Counted from the stretch's first letter, positions 6,072 to 53,110 are shown. The stretch: DNA of 54,818 nt from Prasinococcaceae sp. CCMP 1430 (GCA_013416795.1 RQSC01000482.1:1-54818); one strand, 5' to 3'. A program made the numbers and translations. Notes: generated by a model not told the origin, from the sequence alone.

Positions 6072-6327
6072 CGCGCCCGCCGCCGCCGCCGCCGCCGCCC
6101 TCTCTCGCGCGCGGCGGCCGCGAGCCGCGGGCCACCCACTCCCATCCTCGCCCCTCGCGCGGGGAAGGGGGGGGGAGGGGGAAGNNNNNNNNNNNNNNNN
6201 NNNNNNNNNNNNNNNNNNNNNNNNNNNNNNNNNNNNNNNNNNNNNNNNNNNNNNNNNNNNNNNNNNNNNNNNNNNNNNNNNNNNNNNNNNNNNNNNNNNN
6301 NNNNNNNNNNNNNNNNNNNNNNNNNNN

Positions 6328-21138: not shown

Positions 21139-21631
21139 NNNNNNNNNNNNNNNNNNNNNNNNNNNNNNNNNNNNNNNNNNNNNNNNNNNNNNNNNNNNNN
21201 NNNNNNNNNNNNNNNNNNNNNNNNNNNNNNNNNNNNNNNNNNNNNNNNNNNNNNNNNNNNNNNNNNNNNNNNNNNNNNNNNNNNNNNNNNNNNNNNNNNN
21301 NNNNNNNNNNNNNNNNNNNNNNNNNNNNNNNNNNNNNNNNNNNNNNNNNNNNNNNNNNNNNNNNNNNNNNNNNNNNNNNNNNNNNNNNNNNNNNNNNNNN
21401 NNNNNNNNNNNNNNNNNNNNNNNNNNNNNNNNNNNNNNNNNNNNNNNNNNNNNNNNNNNNNNNNNNNNNNNNNNNNNNNNNNNNNNNNNNNNNNNNNNNN
21501 NNNNNNNNNNNNNNNNNNNNNNNNNNNNNNNNNNNNNNNNNNNNNNNNNNNNNNNNNNNNNNNNNNNNNNNNNNNNNNNNNNNNNNNNNNNNNNNNNNNN
21601 NNNNNNNNNNNNNNNNNNNNNNNNNNNNNNN

Positions 21632-27171: not shown

Positions 27172-30100
27172 ATGGCGGCGGCGTACGTGTGGGGGGTGGC
27201 GGTGCCGGGCTCGGCGGAGGCGTGCGACGAGGAGGGCTCGGCCGCGCCGGTGCGCGCGGGTGGCGGCGAGGCGTTCGCGCGCGCGGAGGCGGCGCTGCTG
27301 CGGGCCGACAGCGGGGCGCCCGCGCTCTAGGGGGCGTCAGACCGCGGGCAGCTCGGCGTGGGCGGTGGTGTGGCGCGCGCAGAGGCCGCGGCGCCGCAGA
27401 GGCTGGAAGCGCTCGAGACGCGCGGCGCAGTGGTGGCGGTCGCGCTGGGCGAGGAACACGCTGCCGCCGTCACCGCCGACGGCGCGGCGTACTGCTGGGG
27501 GGCGGGCGAGTACGGCCAGCTTGCCAACAACGTGTCGGCGCAGCGCACGAAGGCGCTCAACGCGGGCGAGAGCCGCTACGACCTGTCGGATCGCGGCGCG
27601 CCGCGGCCGGTGCGCGAGCTCGCGCAGAAGCGCGTGCGCGTGGTGGGCGTGGCGTGCGGCGAGCGCCACACGGCGTTCCTGGGCGACGCGTGCGACGTGT
27701 GGGGAGCGGGCGATGCCAGCTGCGGCGCGCTCGGCGTCGGCGCGGGCGGCGCGCGAGCAGCCCCAGTTCCAACGCGCTGCGAGGCGCTGTGGGGGCTGCC
27801 AGTGACGCGCATCGCGGCGGGCGACGCGCACACCCTCTGCATCACCGCGGGCGGCGCGCTGTGGGGATGGGGTCGGAACAACAAAGGCCAACTCGGCATC
27901 GGCGTCGTGTCTCCCCAGGAGCCGCTCCCCCGCCGAGCGGCGCTGCCCGAAGGCGCCGCGGCGACAGCAGCGGCCGGCGGCGGCTCGTTCTCGGTGGTGG
28001 TATCGGCGTGCGGCGCGTGCTACGCGATGGGCGACAATCGCATGGGGCAACTGGGGCGATCGCTGCACGAACCCATGCAAGTGCGGCCGACGCGCGTGAG
28101 CGCCGTCGAGGCGCTCACACACGGCGCGTGCGCGCGTGCGTGTGCGGCAGGAACCGCCCACGCACTGCTGCTGTGCTCGGGCGGGCGCGTGATCGCTTGG
28201 GGTGCCAACGAGGTGGGGCAGTGCGGCACAGGAGCGCGTGAGGCGATGTCGGCACCGGCAGTAGTGCGCGGGCTTCCGACGGCTGCGGTTTGCGTCGCGG
28301 CGGGGGCAGACACATCGGTGGCGCTGTGCAGTGAGAGCGCGGCGGCGGTGGAACCGCGCGCGCCTTCATTTTGGACAGCAGAGGGCATACAGCGAGCGAT
28401 CGACGTGGCGCAGGCGAGCGGTGACGTCGTACCTCTCCTTCGGCGCCTCGAAGGTTCGCTTGGCAAACTCGAGATATTCAATGGCTCGTTCCGCGGCGGT
28501 AGCGCCGATCCGACGCGGGGTACACCGGCTGAACGCGAGGCTGCGGTGCAGTGGGCGATTGACGCGCGAGGCGCCGAGCGCGCGTACAACGCTCTTTGCC
28601 GCGCGCACGCGGGAGGCGCGACGGTGCTCGCACAGTGCGCGCAGAAGGCGCTCGCGTCTCTGCGGCGTGGCGCACAGGCGCGCGGCGCGCAGGCGCAGGC
28701 GACTGCGTGGAGCGCTGAGCGCGTGCGCTTCCTCCCGCTGGTGCTCCAGTCTCCTGCTGTGCGCCAGACGACGCTAGAGGCGCGCGTGCTCTTTGCGGAT
28801 GTCACCAATGCCGTGCGCCTACTGCCGCGAGGCTTGAAGGAGGATCTCGTGCGCGTGTGGAGGTCCTACCCGACGGAGCTGCTGGTGTCAAGGTTAATTC
28901 GCCCGGTGGTACGCCACATCGCCTTCGGAATACAGAACGCGGCTGCCAAGGGCAAGATGCGGTCACCCATCACCGGCGCGCCCCTTGCCGCCCCCGACGC
29001 ATGGGGGCCGAGCAGCGTGGGCGACGGGGTGCCGCAGGCGGCCGAGTTGCTCAAGACTATGTGGCGCGCTGCCTGCGTAGACGCAAAGGTCAGGAGCGTG
29101 GGTGACGCGGGCAATGCCTGCGACGGCCGCCTTAATGCAGCTGAGGCCGACTGTGCTGGAGACAGGCTCATTCACGCGCGAGAGTTTGCCATCGGCGAGA
29201 TCGCACGCAGCGTGGACCTCCACCTTGACTTCTTGGAGCTCATCAAGCCTACGCCGACGCGCGCGCAGCTGCCCCCTTTCTGCTTCTGCTCCATGCCCTT
29301 CCTGCTCGACGCCGAGGCCAAGCGGCAGGTGGTCTGCTTCGCAGCCATGCTCAAGATGGGGCAGGAGCTCAACAGCGATGCGGGTGACGGGGAGCCACCG
29401 AACTTCTTTGAAATTAGCGTACGACGCACGAGCCTGGTGGCTGATGGTGCGGCGGCAGTGCTCTCCGCTTCGCGCGACGAGCTCGCACGACCACTCCGAA
29501 TACATTTCGTAGGAGAAGATGGTGTCGACCACGGTGGACCCCTACGCGAGTTCTTCCAGCTCGCGCTGGCGGCACTCACTACCAATTCACGTGTGTGCAC
29601 GTACAGCGAGGCCAGCCGCACGCAGTGGCTGACTCATGGCTTGGAACAGCCGTCCACGCGAGCGATGCGCATCGATGATACTGTCGATGCGGTGGCCGGT
29701 GTCGATCGGTGCGGCGGAGGCGGTGGCAGCAGCGGCCTCGACTCGTCGTACGCCCGCTTCGATCAGCTCGACCGCCAATTGCGTCGCGTGGAGGACCTGG
29801 GCAACGGCGCGTGGGTGCAAATGGAACAAGACGCGGCCGAAGGAACAGAACAGGGCGCAGATGCCCACGCGCGCACGAGCGGCGGCGACGGCGCAAGCGA
29901 GCACACTGACATGGGTGCAGTTAGTGACGCTGGCACCGTGCGCTCGCTGGGCATGGACGCCTTCCGGCTGATGGGCCTGCTCATTGGGCTCGCTGTGCAC
30001 AACGGCGTCACGTGCGCGCTGCGTTTCCCACCGGTGCTATGGCGCAGGCTCCTCCTCGCATGCCGCGAGGCCAGCGGTGGTGCCGCCATGCGCACGCAGT

Positions 30101-30816
30101 CGCGCCTCTGGGCTGCCAGCGCCGACACTTTCGACCTCGCCGACGTATCTTACACCCTCGATGAGCTCGCGGGCGTCGACAGTGCGCTGGCAGAGACACT
30201 CGGCCGCGTCCTGCACTACGACGGTGACGTCGGGGCCGACATGGGGTTGTTCTTCACGACCGCGGAGGGACACGAGCTCTACCCAGGCTCGGCTGACGAG
30301 GCAGTCACCAACGACAACAGAGAGGAGTTTGTGAAGCGCTACATCAAGTGGGTGTTGCGTGACTCAGTGAAGGCGCAGCTGGCGGCTCTGTGCGGCGGTT
30401 TTGCCCAGCTCGTGGCGGGTCCTGCTGCGGCCATCCTGACGCCGGATGATCTCGAGCAGATCGTGTGTGGGCTACCTCACCTCGACTTCAAGGCGTTGGA
30501 GGCGTCGACTCGCTACGAGGGCGGCTACAGCAAGGACACTCCCGTGGTGCGCTGGTTCTGGAAAGTGGTGCACTCGCGGCCGCTCGCGTGGCAGCGGCGC
30601 CTGCTGACGTTCGTCACGGCATCGGCGCGCGCACCGCTCGGTGGCCTGGGCAAGCTCGGCCTGACGCTGCAGCGAGCCGGCCCTGATACGAACAGGCTGC
30701 CCACGGCCAGCACGTGCTTCCACGTGCTGCTGATGCCCGAGTACGCCGACGAGGCGAAGGTCGCCTCCAAGCTGGACGCGGCTCTCAGGCACGCGCACGG
30801 CTTTGGCAACGAGTGA
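27172..30816 (+). CDS. RCC1-repeat + HECT E3 ubiquitin ligase (small-HERC-like); one in-frame TAG at 27328-27330
   Basis: RCC1 repeats (WGAGEYGQL, VACGERHT, WGRNNKGQLG, WGANEVGQCG). HECT domain (FVGEDGVDHGGPLREFF, WFWKVV, LPTASTCF with the catalytic Cys). TGTAA at 30981. Confidence 0.92.
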
Positions 30817-31303: not shown

Positions 31304-34300
31304 ATGGCCGGCGAGGGAGGGGACGAGGAGATGGCGGGGGTGCCGCCGGCGCCCGCCGCCATGTACGGCCGCTCCGGCAGCGTTTTTGTTGATGCCGAGC
31401 CTGATGGGACGGGCAACGCCTCACCCGGCGCGGCGGGCATGTGGGGCTTGGACGCGGCGCGCTCCGCACCCGACAACGTGCGGCGGGCGGTCGTGTCATC
31501 GCACCGCTCGCTCAAGTCGCGCGTGTCGCACGACGTCGACGCGTGCCTGGCGCTCAGATGCTGCCCGGGCTCGGCGCGTCTGACCACTAAGTGGCTCCTT
31601 ATTTTTTGGGTGGCCGTCTTCTTCTGCGTCGAACTTGCGCTTGCCACCGTGCTCTTCGTGCTGGATGTCTTCGGCGTCGGCCAGACCTTCGCCGACAACT
31701 GTTCCAGCTGGATAGCGGATCAACTGGGCAACTGGACGACCTGGGATGGCTCCAGTTGCGACGCGAGCTCGTCCGACTATTGCCCGTGCAACGTGGCTTG
31801 TGCAATAGCCGACGGGGAGGTGCGGGGGCCAAGCGATGAAGGCGTCGAGCACTTGGACGTCGCGAGTTACGTGCTCACGATCAGCATTGTAGCAATTGAG
31901 CTCGGTTGTCTCTTGATCATCACGCTCAAGATCACCAAGCCTCTATTCAAACTGGAGAAGAGCGTCTCGCAGATAGTCGCCGCCGCGGAGGCGACCGAAG
32001 CAGAGGACGCGATGCGACACGCTGCCATAGGGGTGGACTCGGAGGATGTCGAGAATGGCGTGTCCCAGCCAGAAGAAACGAACGATAGCACCCCCCGCCA
32101 AGTTCGAGGTCCGTCTGACTTTTCCTACGAGCTGGACGCGCTAGGAGCGAAGGACCGCAAAAAGGCAGAGGTGCGCCGCCGAGTGCGCACAGGGGGGGAG
32201 CAGCTCACCGCGTCGGGGCAGCAAGTCGATGAGGACGAAATGGTCATTGAGGAGGAGCTCTGGATCGAGACCGAGACTATGCCCGGTGATCTGGCTCGGC
32301 TTCACGTATCCCTGAACTTGTTGCTTCGACGGATGCAGGCACTGCAGCGGCAGCGCGCCATGCTCCGCGCGCAGCTCATCGCATCTCTGCGAAGCGAGTG
32401 CCATGCCCGCCGGGAGCTGCACGAACTCAAGTGCCAAGTTGCCGCGACTGAGAGCGCAGCACGGCAGGGAGGCAACGCGTCCGCTTCACCGGAGGCAAAC
32501 CCGGAGCATCGTGCTGTGGGGCGCCTGCTCCCTCCTCTCCGTGCGAAGCCCAAAGACGCTCCCATCTCGCTCTTTTGCGCAACTTGGAATGTAGGCGAGG
32601 CGAGACCGCCTGACGTGCTGCCGAGCCTGCTGCACCATGCGCTCGAGGCGCGAGCGGACGTGGTTGCGATCGCCGTGCAGGAGTGCACATTCAAGCACGG
32701 CCTGACCCGCAACAAGAAAAGAGCCCTGGGTGGCGGGGGGAGTGGCGGGGCAGGCGTGGTCAGCGTGCAGGAGCACATGGCGGATGTGATCCAGACGACC
32801 CTCGGGCACGCGTACGGCCTCGTTGACGCGGCCAACATCCTCGACGGCAGCGACAGCGTTCGCAGCAACGTTGTGGGCACCGTGCTTGGCTCCCCGGACG
32901 CAGCGGGCATCCGCATATTTGTGTTCGCACACGCGTGCCACCACGCCTTCGTCGCGCCCATGGGCGTCAGCAGCGTGACGACCGGCGTCGGGGGCATCGG
33001 ATACAACAAAGGCGCAGTAGCAGTGTCCGTGAAGGTGCGCAACACCCGCATTCTCTTTGTCGGCTCGCATCTGGCAGCACACCAGGGCGAGGCACGGCAA
33101 CGAGACAGCGACTTCCAGAAGATTTCGAGACTAGTGCGCGCCCCTATTTGGCGCGAGGCGGCGTGGGGCGGCTGCCACATGCCCTGGGAGCAGGATGCCA
33201 CCTCGGCTAGCGCCTCACATAGCGGGAGTGCTGGCGAGGACACGGGCAAGGCCGCCATACGCGGCGCGGCGAATGCCCTCAGGGGCGCCATGCAGGGGAT
33301 CCTCGCAGGTGGCGCGTCAAAGTGGGAAGGGGCACACGACGCCACAGTGCCCGGCGAGGTCGCGAGCACAGCGGCCAACAAAGGCATGGATGGCAAGAGC
33401 GTGACGAGGAACGTAGCGCTGCCGCAACCCGAAGCTGCTGTGTCCCATCACCATACCGTCTGGATGGGCGACCTCAATTATCGCATCGAGCTTGAACGAG
33501 ACCAAGTGCTTGAGCTCGCTCGCAAAGGCAACTTCGACGAGCTCTACGCCGCCGATCAGCTCCGCGCGAGTCGCGAGGCCGGCACTGCTTTCGCTGGCTA
33601 CAACGAGGCCCCCATTTCGTTTGCACCGACGTTCAAATTCACACCCGGCACTGGGGAATACGAGAGCAAGAAAATGCGCGTGCCCTCATACTGCGACAGG
33701 GTCCTCTGGCGCTCCGCTGCAGGTCACCACTGCAGCTGCTCCACGTATGGCTCTGATCCTACCATCAAAACGAGCGATCACAAGCCGGTCTTTGCGGTCC
33801 TCAACGCCAGCCTCGGTCCTCGGCAGCTCGGTGGGCGTCCAGCAACGTTCGTACTCAAGCTCCACATCTTTGACGCTCGCGCGGTGCTCAGCGCTGGTGG
33901 TCCCGAATCTCTGGATGCTTCCCCCGGCCGAACTGCCGACTCTTTCAGCAGATACGATGTGCCGTCCGTGGGAGCTGAAGACACCACGCGCCAGGAGAGG
34001 TTGTCCGGGGAGGAGGCGTCGCTGGCGACGCCGCCTTTCGGCTATCGCATCCTCCTGAGCTGCGGCCACATGCGACGGACGCCTGCCGTGCTGAACGTCG
34101 CAGGTGTCGGTCATGACCCCTCCGTGATGGCACCTTCCGCGGGCGGCACGCTCCTTCTCTACATTGAGGAAGACAACGTCGAAGCCCTCTTAGCAGACCC
34201 CTTCGTGATCGTCGTGCACAGCTCTGGGGCGGAGGCGTCCTTCATCGAAGCTACTCCCGCGACCGTGACATCTGCGGAAGCCGAGCGTCGACAGGCACTT

Positions 34301-34624
34301 GCCAGGCAAAGCACCACCACCGCCGCCGACGGGAGGAACGCTCCAGGCGCCAACCACGACAGCGGCGAGGGGAAGCACCAAGAAACGCTGCAGCGCCCGG
34401 GATCGACGATGGGGCGGATGGGCTCCGGCAGCTTCGCCATCCCGCGAGAGGCCATTGTGAGCGCGGGCCTCCTTCCTGACGACCGCCCCAGCGACGAGCA
34501 CCGGAGGGTGCACGCGCCGACGCGCGACACGGCCCTTCCTGTCTCGGCCGACCTGTACTCGTCGGGCGTCCGGGCCGGCCGGCTGACATGTCGGCTCGCG
34601 CTGTCTCTCCACGCGCCTCAGTAA
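31304..34624 (+). CDS. Inositol polyphosphate 5-phosphatase with N-terminal two-TM/HAMP-like module
   Basis: 5-phosphatase motifs TWNV, QE, NKGAV, SHLAAH, WMGDLNYRI, DQL, FAPTFKF, PSYCDRVLW and SDHKPV. Two hydrophobic helices at ~31592-31680 and ~31860-31930. Confidence 0.92.
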   Translation: MAGEGGDEEMAGVPPAPAAMYGRSGSVFVDAEPDGTGNASPGAAGMWGLDAARSAPDNVRRAVVSSHRSLKSRVSHDVDACLALRCCPGSARLTTKWLLIFWVAVFFCVELALATVLFVLDVFGVGQTFADNCSSWIADQLGNWTTWDGSSCDASSSDYCPCNVACAIADGEVRGPSDEGVEHLDVASYVLTISIVAIELGCLLIITLKITKPLFKLEKSVSQIVAAAEATEAEDAMRHAAIGVDSEDVENGVSQPEETNDSTPRQVRGPSDFSYELDALGAKDRKKAEVRRRVRTGGEQLTASGQQVDEDEMVIEEELWIETETMPGDLARLHVSLNLLLRRMQALQRQRAMLRAQLIASLRSECHARRELHELKCQVAATESAARQGGNASASPEANPEHRAVGRLLPPLRAKPKDAPISLFCATWNVGEARPPDVLPSLLHHALEARADVVAIAVQECTFKHGLTRNKKRALGGGGSGGAGVVSVQEHMADVIQTTLGHAYGLVDAANILDGSDSVRSNVVGTVLGSPDAAGIRIFVFAHACHHAFVAPMGVSSVTTGVGGIGYNKGAVAVSVKVRNTRILFVGSHLAAHQGEARQRDSDFQKISRLVRAPIWREAAWGGCHMPWEQDATSASASHSGSAGEDTGKAAIRGAANALRGAMQGILAGGASKWEGAHDATVPGEVASTAANKGMDGKSVTRNVALPQPEAAVSHHHTVWMGDLNYRIELERDQVLELARKGNFDELYAADQLRASREAGTAFAGYNEAPISFAPTFKFTPGTGEYESKKMRVPSYCDRVLWRSAAGHHCSCSTYGSDPTIKTSDHKPVFAVLNASLGPRQLGGRPATFVLKLHIFDARAVLSAGGPESLDASPGRTADSFSRYDVPSVGAEDTTRQERLSGEEASLATPPFGYRILLSCGHMRRTPAVLNVAGVGHDPSVMAPSAGGTLLLYIEEDNVEALLADPFVIVVHSSGAEASFIEATPATVTSAEAERRQALARQSTTTAADGRNAPGANHDSGEGKHQETLQRPGSTMGRMGSGSFAIPREAIVSAGLLPDDRPSDEHRRVHAPTRDTALPVSADLYSSGVRAGRLTCRLALSLHAPQ

Positions 34625-35135
34625 GAGACAAAAAACCACGGGCGACACCCAACTTTGACGTCTTTTTTCTTTGTTTCCTCTCGTTCACGGCTGTTGTTCC
34701 CCCCTCGCACGTTGATGACGACAAAGCAAGTGAAACCATATTTAGGGTCAACACACACAACCCGAACACAACGCCCCGCCTTGGTCAGTCGCGACAACAA
34801 TTCGCACTTAGATCGGACGACGCTTCTTTCACACAGACCCTCTTTCCCCTTCTTTTCCCTCACCTCGGTGCACACCACCCTCGCACGCCATTGGGGACGA
34901 TCGAAAGGTATTTCAGTCCGCTTCGGGCCGTGTTGGGTGTTCGATCGAACTGACCTGTTTGTTGGTTGATTCGGTTTTCCGACCGTTGCCGTCGCGCTGC
35001 GGGGGCGGGGGGCACGCGCGCAATGCGATTTGACGTACGTTTGGCGTGGGGTGCGGGCCGCGGGCGCCGCGCGAAGCGGGGGGCGGGTCGTCGGCGGGGG
35101 GAGGCGCGGCNNNNNNNNNNNNNNNNNNNNNNNNN

Positions 35136-36092
35136 CGCCGCTCGTTCGGCCTCATCCTGCGCAAGGTCGGCGGCGCGCAGGGCGGCGCGGCCGCCGCCGC
35201 GGTGGACGCCGCGCTCGATGTGGGCTCGAAGCGCCGCGCGCGAGTGGTGAAGCGCTTCGAAGGCGGCACCGCCGGGCGCGAGGCCCAGCAGCGCAACTTC
35301 CGCGTCGCCGTCGTGCGCCCCGTGCTCGCGCCCGTCTTCGTGCACGGCCCGCCGCCAGCGCTTCAGGCGCAGGTCGACGCGCAGCCTGCGCTCAAGCCGC
35401 TGGACGGAGGCGCGGATGATATGCCCGCCATGGCCGACGCCGAGCTCGACTTCGGCGAGATGGACACCGACATGGGCGCAGCCGACGACCCCGCGGCGTT
35501 CGTCCCCGAGTCGCCGACGGCCGACGCCGCGATGGGCGAGGACGGCGCCGCCGAAGAGGAGGCGCCCGTCGAGGAGGGCGTGGCCAACGAGAGGGGCGTG
35601 TCCTTCGCCCCCGGTACCGGCTCGCTCGCAACCCTCGAGGAGCCTGCCAAGGCGCCGCGCGCGCGCAAGCCCAAGTTCACGCGCGAGGCAGCCGCGCAGC
35701 GCCAGTCGCTCGCGGGGCTGAGGCGCTCCAGCCGCCGGCGCATCGCGCCGCTTCAGTACTGGCGCGGCGAGAAGAAGGAGTACGAGCGCAAGTACATGTC
35801 GCTCCCGACCGTTTCCAGCTTCAAGAAGCTCGAGCCCTTCTCGCCGAGCGACTGGAACAAGCCGAAGCGACGCGCTCGCACCAACGCGGGCGGCGCCAAG
35901 AAGACCACCAAGCGCAAGGGAAAGACAAACGCCGCCACCGCCGGCGGAGCTACGGAGACGGAGGCCGTGCAGACCACGCCGACCGGCATGTCGGCGGGTG
36001 CGAGCGGCTCGCCCACTCCCGGTCCCATCGTCGCTGTGTCACGGCTTACCGAAGGCATGTCCCCCGCCCCGGCCATGGCCATGGAGAGCTGA
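35136..36092 (+). CDS. CENPC: Centromere protein C (CENP-C/Mif2-like); 5' end at a small N gap
   Basis: CENP-C motif RQSLAGLRRSSRRRIAPLQYWRGEKKEY followed by plant-type SLPTV. The rest is low complexity. TGTAA at 36296. Confidence 0.8.
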   Translation, partial: RRSFGLILRKVGGAQGGAAAAAVDAALDVGSKRRARVVKRFEGGTAGREAQQRNFRVAVVRPVLAPVFVHGPPPALQAQVDAQPALKPLDGGADDMPAMADAELDFGEMDTDMGAADDPAAFVPESPTADAAMGEDGAAEEEAPVEEGVANERGVSFAPGTGSLATLEEPAKAPRARKPKFTREAAAQRQSLAGLRRSSRRRIAPLQYWRGEKKEYERKYMSLPTVSSFKKLEPFSPSDWNKPKRRARTNAGGAKKTTKRKGKTNAATAGGATETEAVQTTPTGMSAGASGSPTPGPIVAVSRLTEGMSPAPAMAMES

Positions 36093-40334: not shown

Positions 40335-40664
40335 NNNNNNNNNNNNNNNNNNNNNNNNNNNNNNNNNNNNNNNNNNNNNNNNNNNNNNNNNNNNNNNNNN
40401 NNNNNNNNNNNNNNNNNNNNNNNNNNNNNNNNNNNNNNNNNNNNNNNNNNNNNNNNNNNNNNNNNNNNNNNNNNNNNNNNNNNNNNNNNNNNNNNNNNNN
40501 NNNNNNNNNNNNNNNNNNNNNNNNNNNNNNNNNNNNNNNNNNCCGCGCGGGGCTCGGCCGTTTCGCCATACGCGGCAGGGCGCGCGCGCGCGCGCGCGGA
40601 TCGGCGCGGCGGCGCGCGCGAACCAGGAAACTGATGGGCCCTGCGTGGCCCATCCGCAGATATC

Positions 40665-51841: not shown

Positions 51842-53110
51842 CTACTGCGCGCGCTGCGCACGCTCGAGCGTCGCCTGCGCCTTGGCCTGCCCCGCGGCCT
51901 GCCCCTTGGGCGCAATCACCAGGGCCGCCAGCGACGCCACGGCGAGCCCCGCGCCGATGCCGGCGTAGATGGCCGGCGGGCCCGACAGCAGCGTGATCTT
52001 GCGAACGAGCATCACCATGGCCGCCGCGACGAGGGCGGCCACGGCAGGGGCCAGGCGCGCCGCGCCTCGCGCGCCGTGTGGCCGCCCCGCCCGCGCCGNN
52101 NNNNNNNNNNNNNNNNNNNNNNNNNNNNNNNNNNNNNNNNNNNNNNNNNNNNNNNNNNNNNNNNNNNNNNNNNNNNNNNNNNNNNNNNNNNNNNNNNNNN
52201 NNNNNNNNNNNNNNNNNNNNNNNNNNNNNNNNNNNNNNNNNNNNNNNNNNNNNNNNNNNNNNNNNNNNNNNNNNNNNNNNNNNNNNNNNNNNNNNNNNNN
52301 NNNNNNNNNNNNNNNNNNNNNNNNNNNNNNNNNNNNNNNNNNNNNNNNNNNNNNNNNNNNNNNNNNNNNNNNNNNNNNNNNNNNNNNNNNNNNNNNNNNN
52401 NNNNNNNNNNNNNNNNNNNNNNNNNNNNNNNNNNNNNNNNNNNNNNNNNNNNNNNNNNNNNNNNNNNNNNNNNNNNNNNNNNNNNNNNNNNNNNNNNNNN
52501 NNNNNNNNNNNNNNNNNNNNNNNNNNNNNNNNNNNNNNNNNNNNNNNNNNNNNNNNNNNNNNNNNNNNNNNNNNNNNNNNNNNNNNNNNNNNNNNNNNNN
52601 NNNNNNNNNNNNNNNNNNNNNNNNNNNNNNNNNNNNNNNNNNNNNNNNNNNNNNNNNNNNNNNNNNNNNNNNNNNNNNNNNNNNNNNNNNNNNNNNNNNN
52701 NNNNNNNNNNNNNNNNNNNNNNNNNNNNNNNNNNNNNNNNNNNNNNNNNNNNNNNNNNNNNNNNNNNNNNNNNNNNNNNNNNNNNNNNNNNNNNNNNNNN
52801 NNNNNNNNNNNNNNNNNNNNNNNNNNNNNNNNNNNNNNNNNNNNNNNNNNNNNNNNNNNNNNNNNNNNNNNNNNNNNNNNNNNNNNNNNNNNNNNNNNNN
52901 NNNNNNNNNNNNNNNNNNNNNNNNNNNNNNNNNNNNNNNNNNNNNNNNNNNNNNNNNNNNNNNNNNNNNNNNNNNNNNNNNNNNNNNNNNNNNNNNNNNN
53001 NNNNNNNNNNNNNNNNNNNNNNNNNNNNNNNNNNNNNNNNNNNNNNNNNNNNNNNCGCCACCGCCGGGGGCGATGGGCGCGACGCCGCCCGCGGGGATGC
53101 CGCCGCCCAT
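51842..53110 (-). CDS. Probable membrane protein, mostly hidden by the N gap
   Basis: Possible start MGGGIPAGG before the gap and two hydrophobic helices plus a stop after it. The linkage across the gap is not verifiable. Confidence 0.35.
   Translation of the reverse strand: MGGGIPAGGVAPIAPGGGXXXXXXXXXXXXXXXXXXXXXXXXXXXXXXXXXXXXXXXXXXXXXXXXXXXXXXXXXXXXXXXXXXXXXXXXXXXXXXXXXXXXXXXXXXXXXXXXXXXXXXXXXXXXXXXXXXXXXXXXXXXXXXXXXXXXXXXXXXXXXXXXXXXXXXXXXXXXXXXXXXXXXXXXXXXXXXXXXXXXXXXXXXXXXXXXXXXXXXXXXXXXXXXXXXXXXXXXXXXXXXXXXXXXXXXXXXXXXXXXXXXXXXXXXXXXXXXXXXXXXXXXXXXXXXXXXXXXXXXXXXXXXXXXXXXXXXXXXXXXXXXXXXXXXXXXXXXXXXXXARAGRPHGARGAARLAPAVAALVAAAMVMLVRKITLLSGPPAIYAGIGAGLAVASLAALVIAPKGQAAGQAKAQATLERAQRAQ

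Follow-up and report, generated by a model that had tools for sequence, protein, structure and literature searches.

We analysed a stretch of 54,818 nucleotides from Prasinococcaceae sp. CCMP 1430 (GCA_013416795.1 RQSC01000482.1:1-54818; the whole stretch is referred to as the window) and one gene in it, which combines two strongly hydrophobic segments with an inositol polyphosphate 5-phosphatase domain in a single open reading frame (ORF). An earlier note, made from the sequence alone, had read the product as a receptor-like 5-phosphatase in which the two helices of a HAMP domain, separated by an acidic insert, transmit a signal sensed at the membrane to the enzyme. The elements described there, namely a first transmembrane segment (TM1), a loop with five Cys and three Trp, a second transmembrane segment (TM2) followed by a helix, an acidic insert, and a helix opening with GDLARL, were all present in the translated sequence. 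Their coordinates are listed in Table 1 with those of the flanking regions.

Table 1. Features of the gene, with positions counted from the first letter of the window; pN/pS is the ratio of non-synonymous to synonymous polymorphism among wild haplotypes, in which the change counts per region are small, so that the values are indications and not tests. AF2, AlphaFold2; pLDDT, predicted local distance difference test; AS1, amphipathic sequence 1.
Feature	Residues	Window	Strand	Observation	pN/pS
Whole coding sequence	1-1106	31304..34624	+	1106 aa plus stop, no internal stop (ORF and translation)	0.30
N-terminal region, predicted cytosolic	1-96	31304..31591	+	Positive flank, no hydrophobic signal peptide	0.18
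TM1	97-120	31592..31663	+	Kyte-Doolittle peak 2.51; helix in AF2 model
Loop, predicted exoplasmic	121-186 (66 aa)	31664..31861	+	5 Cys, 3 Trp, 2 N-x-S/T sites, net charge -11
TM2	187-208	31862..31927	+	Kyte-Doolittle peak 2.53; pairs with its twin at 195-207 in dimer model
TM1, loop, and TM2 together					0.30
Juxtamembrane amphipathic helix, KITKPLFKLEKSVSQIVAAA	209-228	31928..31987	+	Weakly HAMP AS1-like; continuous with TM2 helix in AF2 model
Acidic insert (tether)	229-326 (98 aa)	31988..32281	+	Net charge -15; pLDDT below 50 over most	0.80
Long helix, predicted coiled coil	327-391	32282..32476	+	Starts with MPGDLARL; AF2 single helix 328-391
Pro-rich linker, coil to catalytic domain	392-419	32477..32560	+	Non-helical, low pLDDT
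Inositol polyphosphate 5-phosphatase domain	420-840	32561..33823	+	Pfam PF22669	0.19
C-terminal region	841-1106	33824..34621	+	pN/pS points to constraint	0.22

The 5-phosphatase and its gene

The catalytic domain matched PF22669 with a score of 199 bits (cutoff 27; E 1.6e-58), and the matches to solved structures (E 3e-38 to 3e-32) included synaptojanin-1 (3e-38), INPP5B (2.8e-37), and OCRL as well as SHIP1/2. The motifs WMGDLNYRI, PSYCDRVLW, SDHKPV, SHLAAHQ, and NKGAVAV were kept in the alignment to synaptojanin-1. TWNVGE and AVQEC were also read directly in the sequence of the domain and are assigned to the catalytic motifs of the family. The phosphatase had been called intact in the earlier note, and the profile score and the retained catalytic motifs agreed with this. 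By sequence, the enzyme is an intact inositol polyphosphate/phosphoinositide 5-phosphatase of the synaptojanin/OCRL/INPP5B type, with predicted activity. Compared with synaptojanin-1, the domain contains an additional low-complexity stretch of ~85 aa rich in Ser, Ala, and Gly (residues 617-700, window 33152-33403), which separates the SHLAAHQ strand from the WMGDLNYR motif. Among 5.8 billion sequences, the nearest non-self proteins shared 47-51% identity across roughly one third of the domain, and the enzyme is therefore divergent, with no close orthologue on record. The C-terminal region that follows the domain, for which a C2/ASH-like sandwich was considered as a possible fold, retrieved no Pfam or NCBIfam match, and the AF2 single-sequence model of residues 838-1000 was unusable (pLDDT 34).

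The gene is most likely an expressed nuclear gene with a single exon, carried by a marine, GC-rich green picoalga; the G+C content of the window is ~70%. A public UniRef member of 1061 aa was 100% identical, and wild variants were 98-99% identical. The start codon is uncertain, as the UniRef model begins at an alternative start, M46 (window 31439), and the transcript contigs extend upstream only to 31394. On the opposite strand, an ORF of 364 aa (32302-33396, -) lies over the phosphatase-coding region; it exemplifies the chance ORFs found at 70% GC, and no evidence marks it as a gene.

A contig of 3142 nt spans 31494-34635, starting upstream of TM1 and ending 11 nt beyond the stop codon, and it is collinear with the genome and free of joints. 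This shows the gene to be unspliced and places the transmembrane part and the phosphatase on one assembled molecule, in line with the single transcript on which the receptor proposal had depended. The contig was obtained from two small runs of the same organism, which are probably transcriptome assemblies. These runs cover the upstream gene to 31001 and then the present gene, with start positions of 31394 or 31494 and end positions of 34614 or 34635, and they fit an RNA origin because the intergenic segment 31002-31393 was covered in neither. Pieces of the gene were also present in seawater metatranscriptome contigs, including one of 32209-32444 in the region of the insert and the coil.

The codon-position pattern expected of coding sequence (G+C content at the third position above that at the first, and the first above the second; GC3>GC1>GC2) was found in this frame for every region except the short 392-419 linker. 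The GC1/GC2/GC3 values were 0.56/0.45/0.75 for the TM1-loop-TM2 block and 0.72/0.42/0.71 for the insert. For the estimates of pN/pS in Table 1, four wild haplotype sequences from Tara, about 98.5% identical, were compared; they differed by 43 synonymous changes, 39 non-synonymous changes, and a single indel of 9 nt that keeps the frame, and no frame-breaking differences were found. The most polymorphic segment was the linker at 392-419 (pN 0.099, pS 0.21), and in the juxtamembrane helix (209-228) polymorphism was not seen. The indel lies at window 34408-34416 in the C-terminal region, where nine bases (three codons, around residues 1036-1038) are missing from all four Tara haplotypes. One Tara scaffold has a 100-base run of N right at the start of TM1 (L015:2895-2994), which accounts for a truncated gene call of 1001 aa (P0011).

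Membrane hairpin, tether, and coiled coil

Hydropathy over the whole protein (Kyte-Doolittle, 19-residue windows) gave only two peaks above 2.0, both of about 2.5. Beyond residue 208 the profile showed no further hydrophobic peak, and the C-terminus is polar. The flanks of the hairpin on the sides away from the loop are both positive/basic, and the loop between the two segments is acidic and contains a single K/R. Basic flanks stay cytosolic according to the positive-inside rule. On this basis we infer that the N-terminus and the phosphatase both lie in the cytosol and that the loop is exoplasmic or luminal. Within the loop, Cys residues occur at 133, 152, 160, 162, and 166 and Trp residues at 136, 144, and 147; it is probably glycosylated and disulfide-bonded, and it matched no Pfam or NCBIfam family. 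A further cluster of Cys residues (C81, C86, and C87 in ACLALRCCPGS, window 31544-31564) lies on the predicted cytosolic, juxtamembrane side just before TM1 and might be a site of S-palmitoylation.

The segment ITKPLFKLEKSVSQI / KITKPLFKLEKSVSQI adjoins TM2 directly. The boundaries of the helices were taken from an AF2 model of residues 85-430 built with no alignment, which had a mean pLDDT of 52 and was used for this purpose only. In this model, the insert at 229-326 had low confidence and is probably largely disordered. The segment GDLARLHVSLNLLLRRMQ begins at residue 328 (GDLARL, 328-333) and opens a predicted helix of 64 residues.

Association of the chain with itself was modelled for residues 185-395 in three runs. 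Two of the runs gave an interaction prediction score from aligned errors (ipSAE) of 0.53 and the other gave 0.52, as compared with 0.01 for the best control; the runs shared at least 79% of their contacts, and the pLDDT of the partner was 54. In a microbial calibration, 21 of 30 solved homodimers and none of 23 proteins with single-chain structures reached the mark applied to this score. The best-defined contacts were i-to-i and in register over 333-382, and a parallel two-stranded coiled coil is therefore indicated. TM2 and the juxtamembrane helix (195-224) also paired with the twin chain, and the contacts at 210, 214, 217, 221, and 224 fall on a single helical face of the a/d type. The protein is thus predicted by the model to be a parallel homodimer through its coiled coil, and the dimeric state that the earlier note had assumed is retained in this form.

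HAMP profiles and searches for relatives

HAMP domains and signalling helices relay signals through continuous helices. In the proposal of a split HAMP, the helix after TM2 would be AS1, the helix opened by GDLARL would be amphipathic sequence 2 (AS2), and the 98-residue insert would lie in the connector. The Pfam HAMP profile (PF00672, gathering score of 25 bits) found no match in the whole protein at E<=1, nor in the N-terminal pieces at E<=10. Each of the ten E. coli controls (Tap, Tar, Tsr, Trg, EnvZ, CpxA, PhoQ, BaeS, NarX, and QseC) matched the same profile, with E values of 7e-17 to 2.6e-3. A local HAMP profile was built from the ten control segments, whose connectors are 13-14 residues long. 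When each true HAMP was left out in turn, it scored 9.5-57.6 bits over its full length. The unjoined N-terminus of the present protein scored 0.7 bits, the AS1-like piece 4.1 bits, and the AS2-like piece (residues 315-360) 0.6 bits. The AS1-like signal came from KPLFKLEKSVSQI, which aligned to profile nodes 8-20 with 3.9-4.1 bits; among unrelated eukaryotic proteins totalling 104,098 residues, one segment scored as high. In hhalign, the probability of a match to HAMP was 1.45% over 15 columns.

The insert was further removed in silico at 441 junction combinations, and each construct was scored on the local profile. The best of them reached 13.4 bits and covered only profile nodes 8-27 (KPLFKLEKSVSQIVA joined to GDLAR). 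This score is a junction artefact, because the artificial join of IVA to GDL recreates the IAxGDL end of AS1. It was also reached in the same scan by one of 100 plain shuffles and two of 100 heptad-preserving shuffles. None of the 441 constructs aligned through both helices, and the best AS2-type alignment (6.3 bits) was obtained only with a Glu donated by the artificial junction. The candidate helices lie 98 residues apart (229-326), as compared with ~14 residues in HAMP, which has ~50 residues in total, and we know of no HAMP domain with a connector of ~100 residues. A sequence search of the PDB with residues 185-400 returned no HAMP chain and two chance matches only, and no HAMP protein among 1.84 billion representatives was linked to residues 90-420 in an exhaustive phmmer search. 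In the dimer model, 195-224 and 333-382 each pair with their own twin, and no AS1-AS2 pair is among the best-defined contacts, which are a subset of all pairs. A HAMP domain is thus not supported in this protein, and the split HAMP of the earlier note, from which its apparent exceptionality came, is largely refuted at the level of sequence.

Relatives of the N-terminal module were sought in several collections. The exhaustive phmmer search with residues 90-420 returned only fragments of the same gene (P0136 and P0137) and a bacterial repeat protein (P0138), which was rejected as a repeat artefact because its 14 copies of CPSDVSFECDAVG sum weak matches to GPSDFSYELDALG. In Pfam and NCBIfam, the N- and C-terminal pieces gave matches only at chance level up to E<=10 (PI3K_P85_iSH2, E 0.03-0.09; DUF7670, E 2.6), and neither Pfam nor phmmer gave a signal of a GPCR (G-protein-coupled receptor) or other family in the N-terminal module. 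No usable match was found by the ESM Atlas feature search, and none of 89 patterns matched in a scan of JGI metagenomes was confirmed as a relative. Two strong hydrophobic segments were found in none of the 119 5-phosphatase homologues of similar length, and Pfam HAMP was found in none of the 120 homologues listed. The earlier note had stated that characterised 5-phosphatases lack such a TM-HAMP input, and the two-pass module indeed has no counterpart among them. Judged from these searches, the N-terminal module appears to be an orphan, and the architecture appears to be restricted to the species or lineage.

A membrane-resident 5-phosphatase and its alternatives

As a rule, phosphoinositide 5-phosphatases are soluble proteins that adaptor domains bring to membranes. 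The type II enzymes synaptojanin-1, INPP5B, and OCRL share the motifs WxGDxNYR, PxxxDRVLW, SDH(K/R)PV, NKGAV, and SH(L/F)AA with the present protein; they are soluble and recruited by Sac1, PH, ASH-RhoGAP, or proline-rich modules, whereas an N-terminal hairpin of two transmembrane segments, an acidic tether, and a coiled coil are found here. Fusions of a seven-transmembrane GPCR with an inositol polyphosphate phosphatase (INPP) have already been described in oomycetes and Nannochloropsis, with a putative function (PMC5784254, PMC6033456), and the earlier description of the present gene as a possible undescribed signalling system was thus overstated. These GPCR-INPP bigrams likewise consist of an N-terminal membrane module fused to a cytosolic C-terminal INPP, but they carry a 7-TM GPCR and belong to stramenopiles, whereas two transmembrane segments with a 66-residue loop are found here in an early-diverging green alga. 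Yeast Inp54p is an endoplasmic reticulum tail-anchored 5-phosphatase (Wiradjaja 2001, as cited in PMC6168264), and according to that secondary account it is likewise a resident lipid phosphatase with a hydrophobic anchor of its own. As far as this account extends, the anchor is a 13-residue C-terminal tail with no luminal loop, tether, or coiled coil, unlike the N-terminal hairpin of the present protein.

Transmembrane-linked phosphoinositide phosphatases are also known with other folds, namely the voltage-sensing phosphatases (VSP/TPTE, including Ci-VSP), Sac1, and TMEM55 (PMC4379879, PMC6563779). These likewise place a transmembrane module and a phosphoinositide phosphatase in one polypeptide, and VSP shows that direct coupling between the two is possible. 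Their catalysis is of the CX5R kind (PTEN-, Sac-, or TMEM55-type), whereas the present domain has the Mg-dependent endonuclease/exonuclease/phosphatase fold, and VSP has a four-helix voltage sensor with a short rigid linker in place of the long flexible linkers seen here. As for the HAMP domain (PF00672) of bacterial sensor kinases and chemoreceptors, the resemblances are a Pro-containing amphipathic helix after TM2, with a hydrophobic register weakly like that of AS1, and a predicted parallel dimer; the differences are the lack of a profile match, a second helix that is not HAMP-like, the 98-residue gap, and no evident four-helix bundle. The concept of a membrane-linked phosphoinositide phosphatase is therefore not new, and it is the two-pass N-terminal architecture that appears, from the available sequences, to be an orphan.

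We regard it as likely that the protein is a membrane-tethered, homodimeric, lineage-restricted 5-phosphatase that is resident on its membrane and bivalent. In the proposed arrangement, TM1 would act as a signal anchor and TM2 would bring the chain back to the cytosol, so that the hairpin would hold the enzyme on one membrane. On the cytosolic side, the amphipathic helix would be followed by the acidic tether, the coiled coil, the Pro-rich linker, the catalytic domain, and the constrained C-terminal region. The coiled coil (50-64 residues) would make the enzyme bivalent, and the tether (~100 residues) and the Pro-rich linker (~30 residues) would give both catalytic domains the reach to scan the cytosolic leaflet or another membrane lying close against it. 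The reaction would be the removal of the 5-phosphate from phosphatidylinositol 4,5-bisphosphate (PI(4,5)P2) or phosphatidylinositol 3,4,5-trisphosphate (PI(3,4,5)P3), and possibly from soluble inositol trisphosphate (IP3). A rigid signal from the membrane to the enzyme is unlikely because the chain has two flexible breaks, the insert (pN/pS 0.80) and the Pro-rich segment 392-419. Several points weigh against this reading. The topology is drawn from hydropathy, and the RNA nature of the two runs is a guess. The dimer predictor is less well calibrated for eukaryotes and can pass coiled coils as memorised patterns. No orthologues were found, which limits any view of conservation of the features to the species. 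Moreover, a constrained outer loop rich in Cys and Trp exceeds the needs of a plain anchor, and an AS1-like match directly after TM2, at a rate of ~1 per 100,000 residues, is somewhat unusual for one protein.

The latter two points bear on the idea that the protein is a receptor-enzyme without a canonical HAMP, in which the loop would sense a ligand, a redox state, or an ion and would alter the packing of TM2 and the juxtamembrane helix in the dimer and thereby the activity of the phosphatase or its access to the membrane. In support of this, the block containing the loop is under purifying selection (pN/pS 0.30) and has many Cys and Trp residues and sequons, the dimer model shows pairing of TM2 and the juxtamembrane helix, xPLxxLxxxVxxIV stands at the position of AS1 with a score that is rare among unrelated residues, and receptor-INPP fusions exist elsewhere (PMC5784254). 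However, with a proteome of ~7,000 proteins (PMC7455551), dozens of AS1-like matches would be expected by chance. The 98-residue segment is also fast-evolving and of low confidence and is followed at a distance by the Pro-rich linker, leaving no rigid path evident; 66 residues are few for a ligand-binding domain, and there are no homologues in which co-conservation could be seen. We therefore consider a receptor-enzyme of this kind unlikely. Slightly less probable again is its more specific form, a minimal two-pass receptor-lipid phosphatase whose loop would sense redox, a metal, or a small ligand and which would have been built independently of the GPCR-INPPs and the voltage-sensing phosphatases. 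Far less credible than either is the split HAMP itself, in which a parallel four-helix bundle under TM2 would form despite the 98-residue insert in its connector and the coiled coil would drive the phosphatase. The Pro after TM2 and the hydrophobic register of AS1 fit the E. coli HAMP alignment, the tetrapeptide GDLA is common to AS2 of Tar, and the 13.4 bits of the best joined construct are within the range of the weakest true HAMPs. Against these, that score consists of AS1 plus the GDL made by the junction and is equalled by 1-2 of 100 shuffles, the AS2 piece is near zero, and both Pfam and hhalign were negative while 10 of 10 controls passed. No HAMP chain was retrieved from the PDB or from the 1.84 billion representatives, a connector of ~100 residues is not known for HAMP, and the best-defined dimer contacts run coil to coil, with those of the AS1-like helix on one face as in a two-helix pair.

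A different objection is that the gene model is an artefact, such that the transmembrane part is not co-translated, owing to an internal start or to two genes lying in one chance-extended ORF, and that the enzyme actually made is a soluble 5-phosphatase with a coiled coil. At this G+C content long ORFs often arise by chance, as the antisense ORF illustrates, the insert is almost neutral in its pN/pS, one transcriptome assembly splits the locus into three contigs, and the EukProt entry has only 481 aa. However, the single 3142-nt contig runs from TM1 to the stop, and the public model joins both parts. The N-terminal region and the TM1-loop-TM2 block have pN/pS values of 0.18-0.30 and the GC3 pattern of coding sequence, and the haplotypes show no frame-breaking differences. 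We consider an artefact improbable, to about the same degree as the minimal receptor or marginally more so.

If the membrane-resident, dimeric enzyme is real, a built-in, coil-doubled, and long-tethered phosphatase would represent a further means of restricting PI(4,5)P2 turnover to a single compartment, and if the loop regulates activity, the protein would be a very small receptor-enzyme. The host belongs to Prasinodermophyta, which diverged before the chlorophytes and streptophytes and in which lipid signalling is unexplored.

Elsewhere in the window, runs of N mark assembly gaps at 6185-6327, 21139-21631, 35111-35135, 40335-40542, and 52099-53055. Dips in G+C content at 20-22 kb and 52-54 kb were considered as AT-rich islands and rejected, as they are caused by such runs. 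Downstream of the phosphatase gene, an ORF at 35046-36092 (+) had no Pfam match and contains RRSSRRRIAPLQYWRGEKKEYE, in which a likeness to the CENP-C motif was seen by eye only; the 25-base run of N at 35111-35135 leaves its 5' frame uncertain. The upstream neighbour (27358-30816, +) encodes a HERC-type E3 ligase of 1152 aa, with an RCC1-like propeller (PF25390, PF00415) and a C-terminal HECT domain (PF00632, E 2e-65), and its transcript contig stops near 31001.

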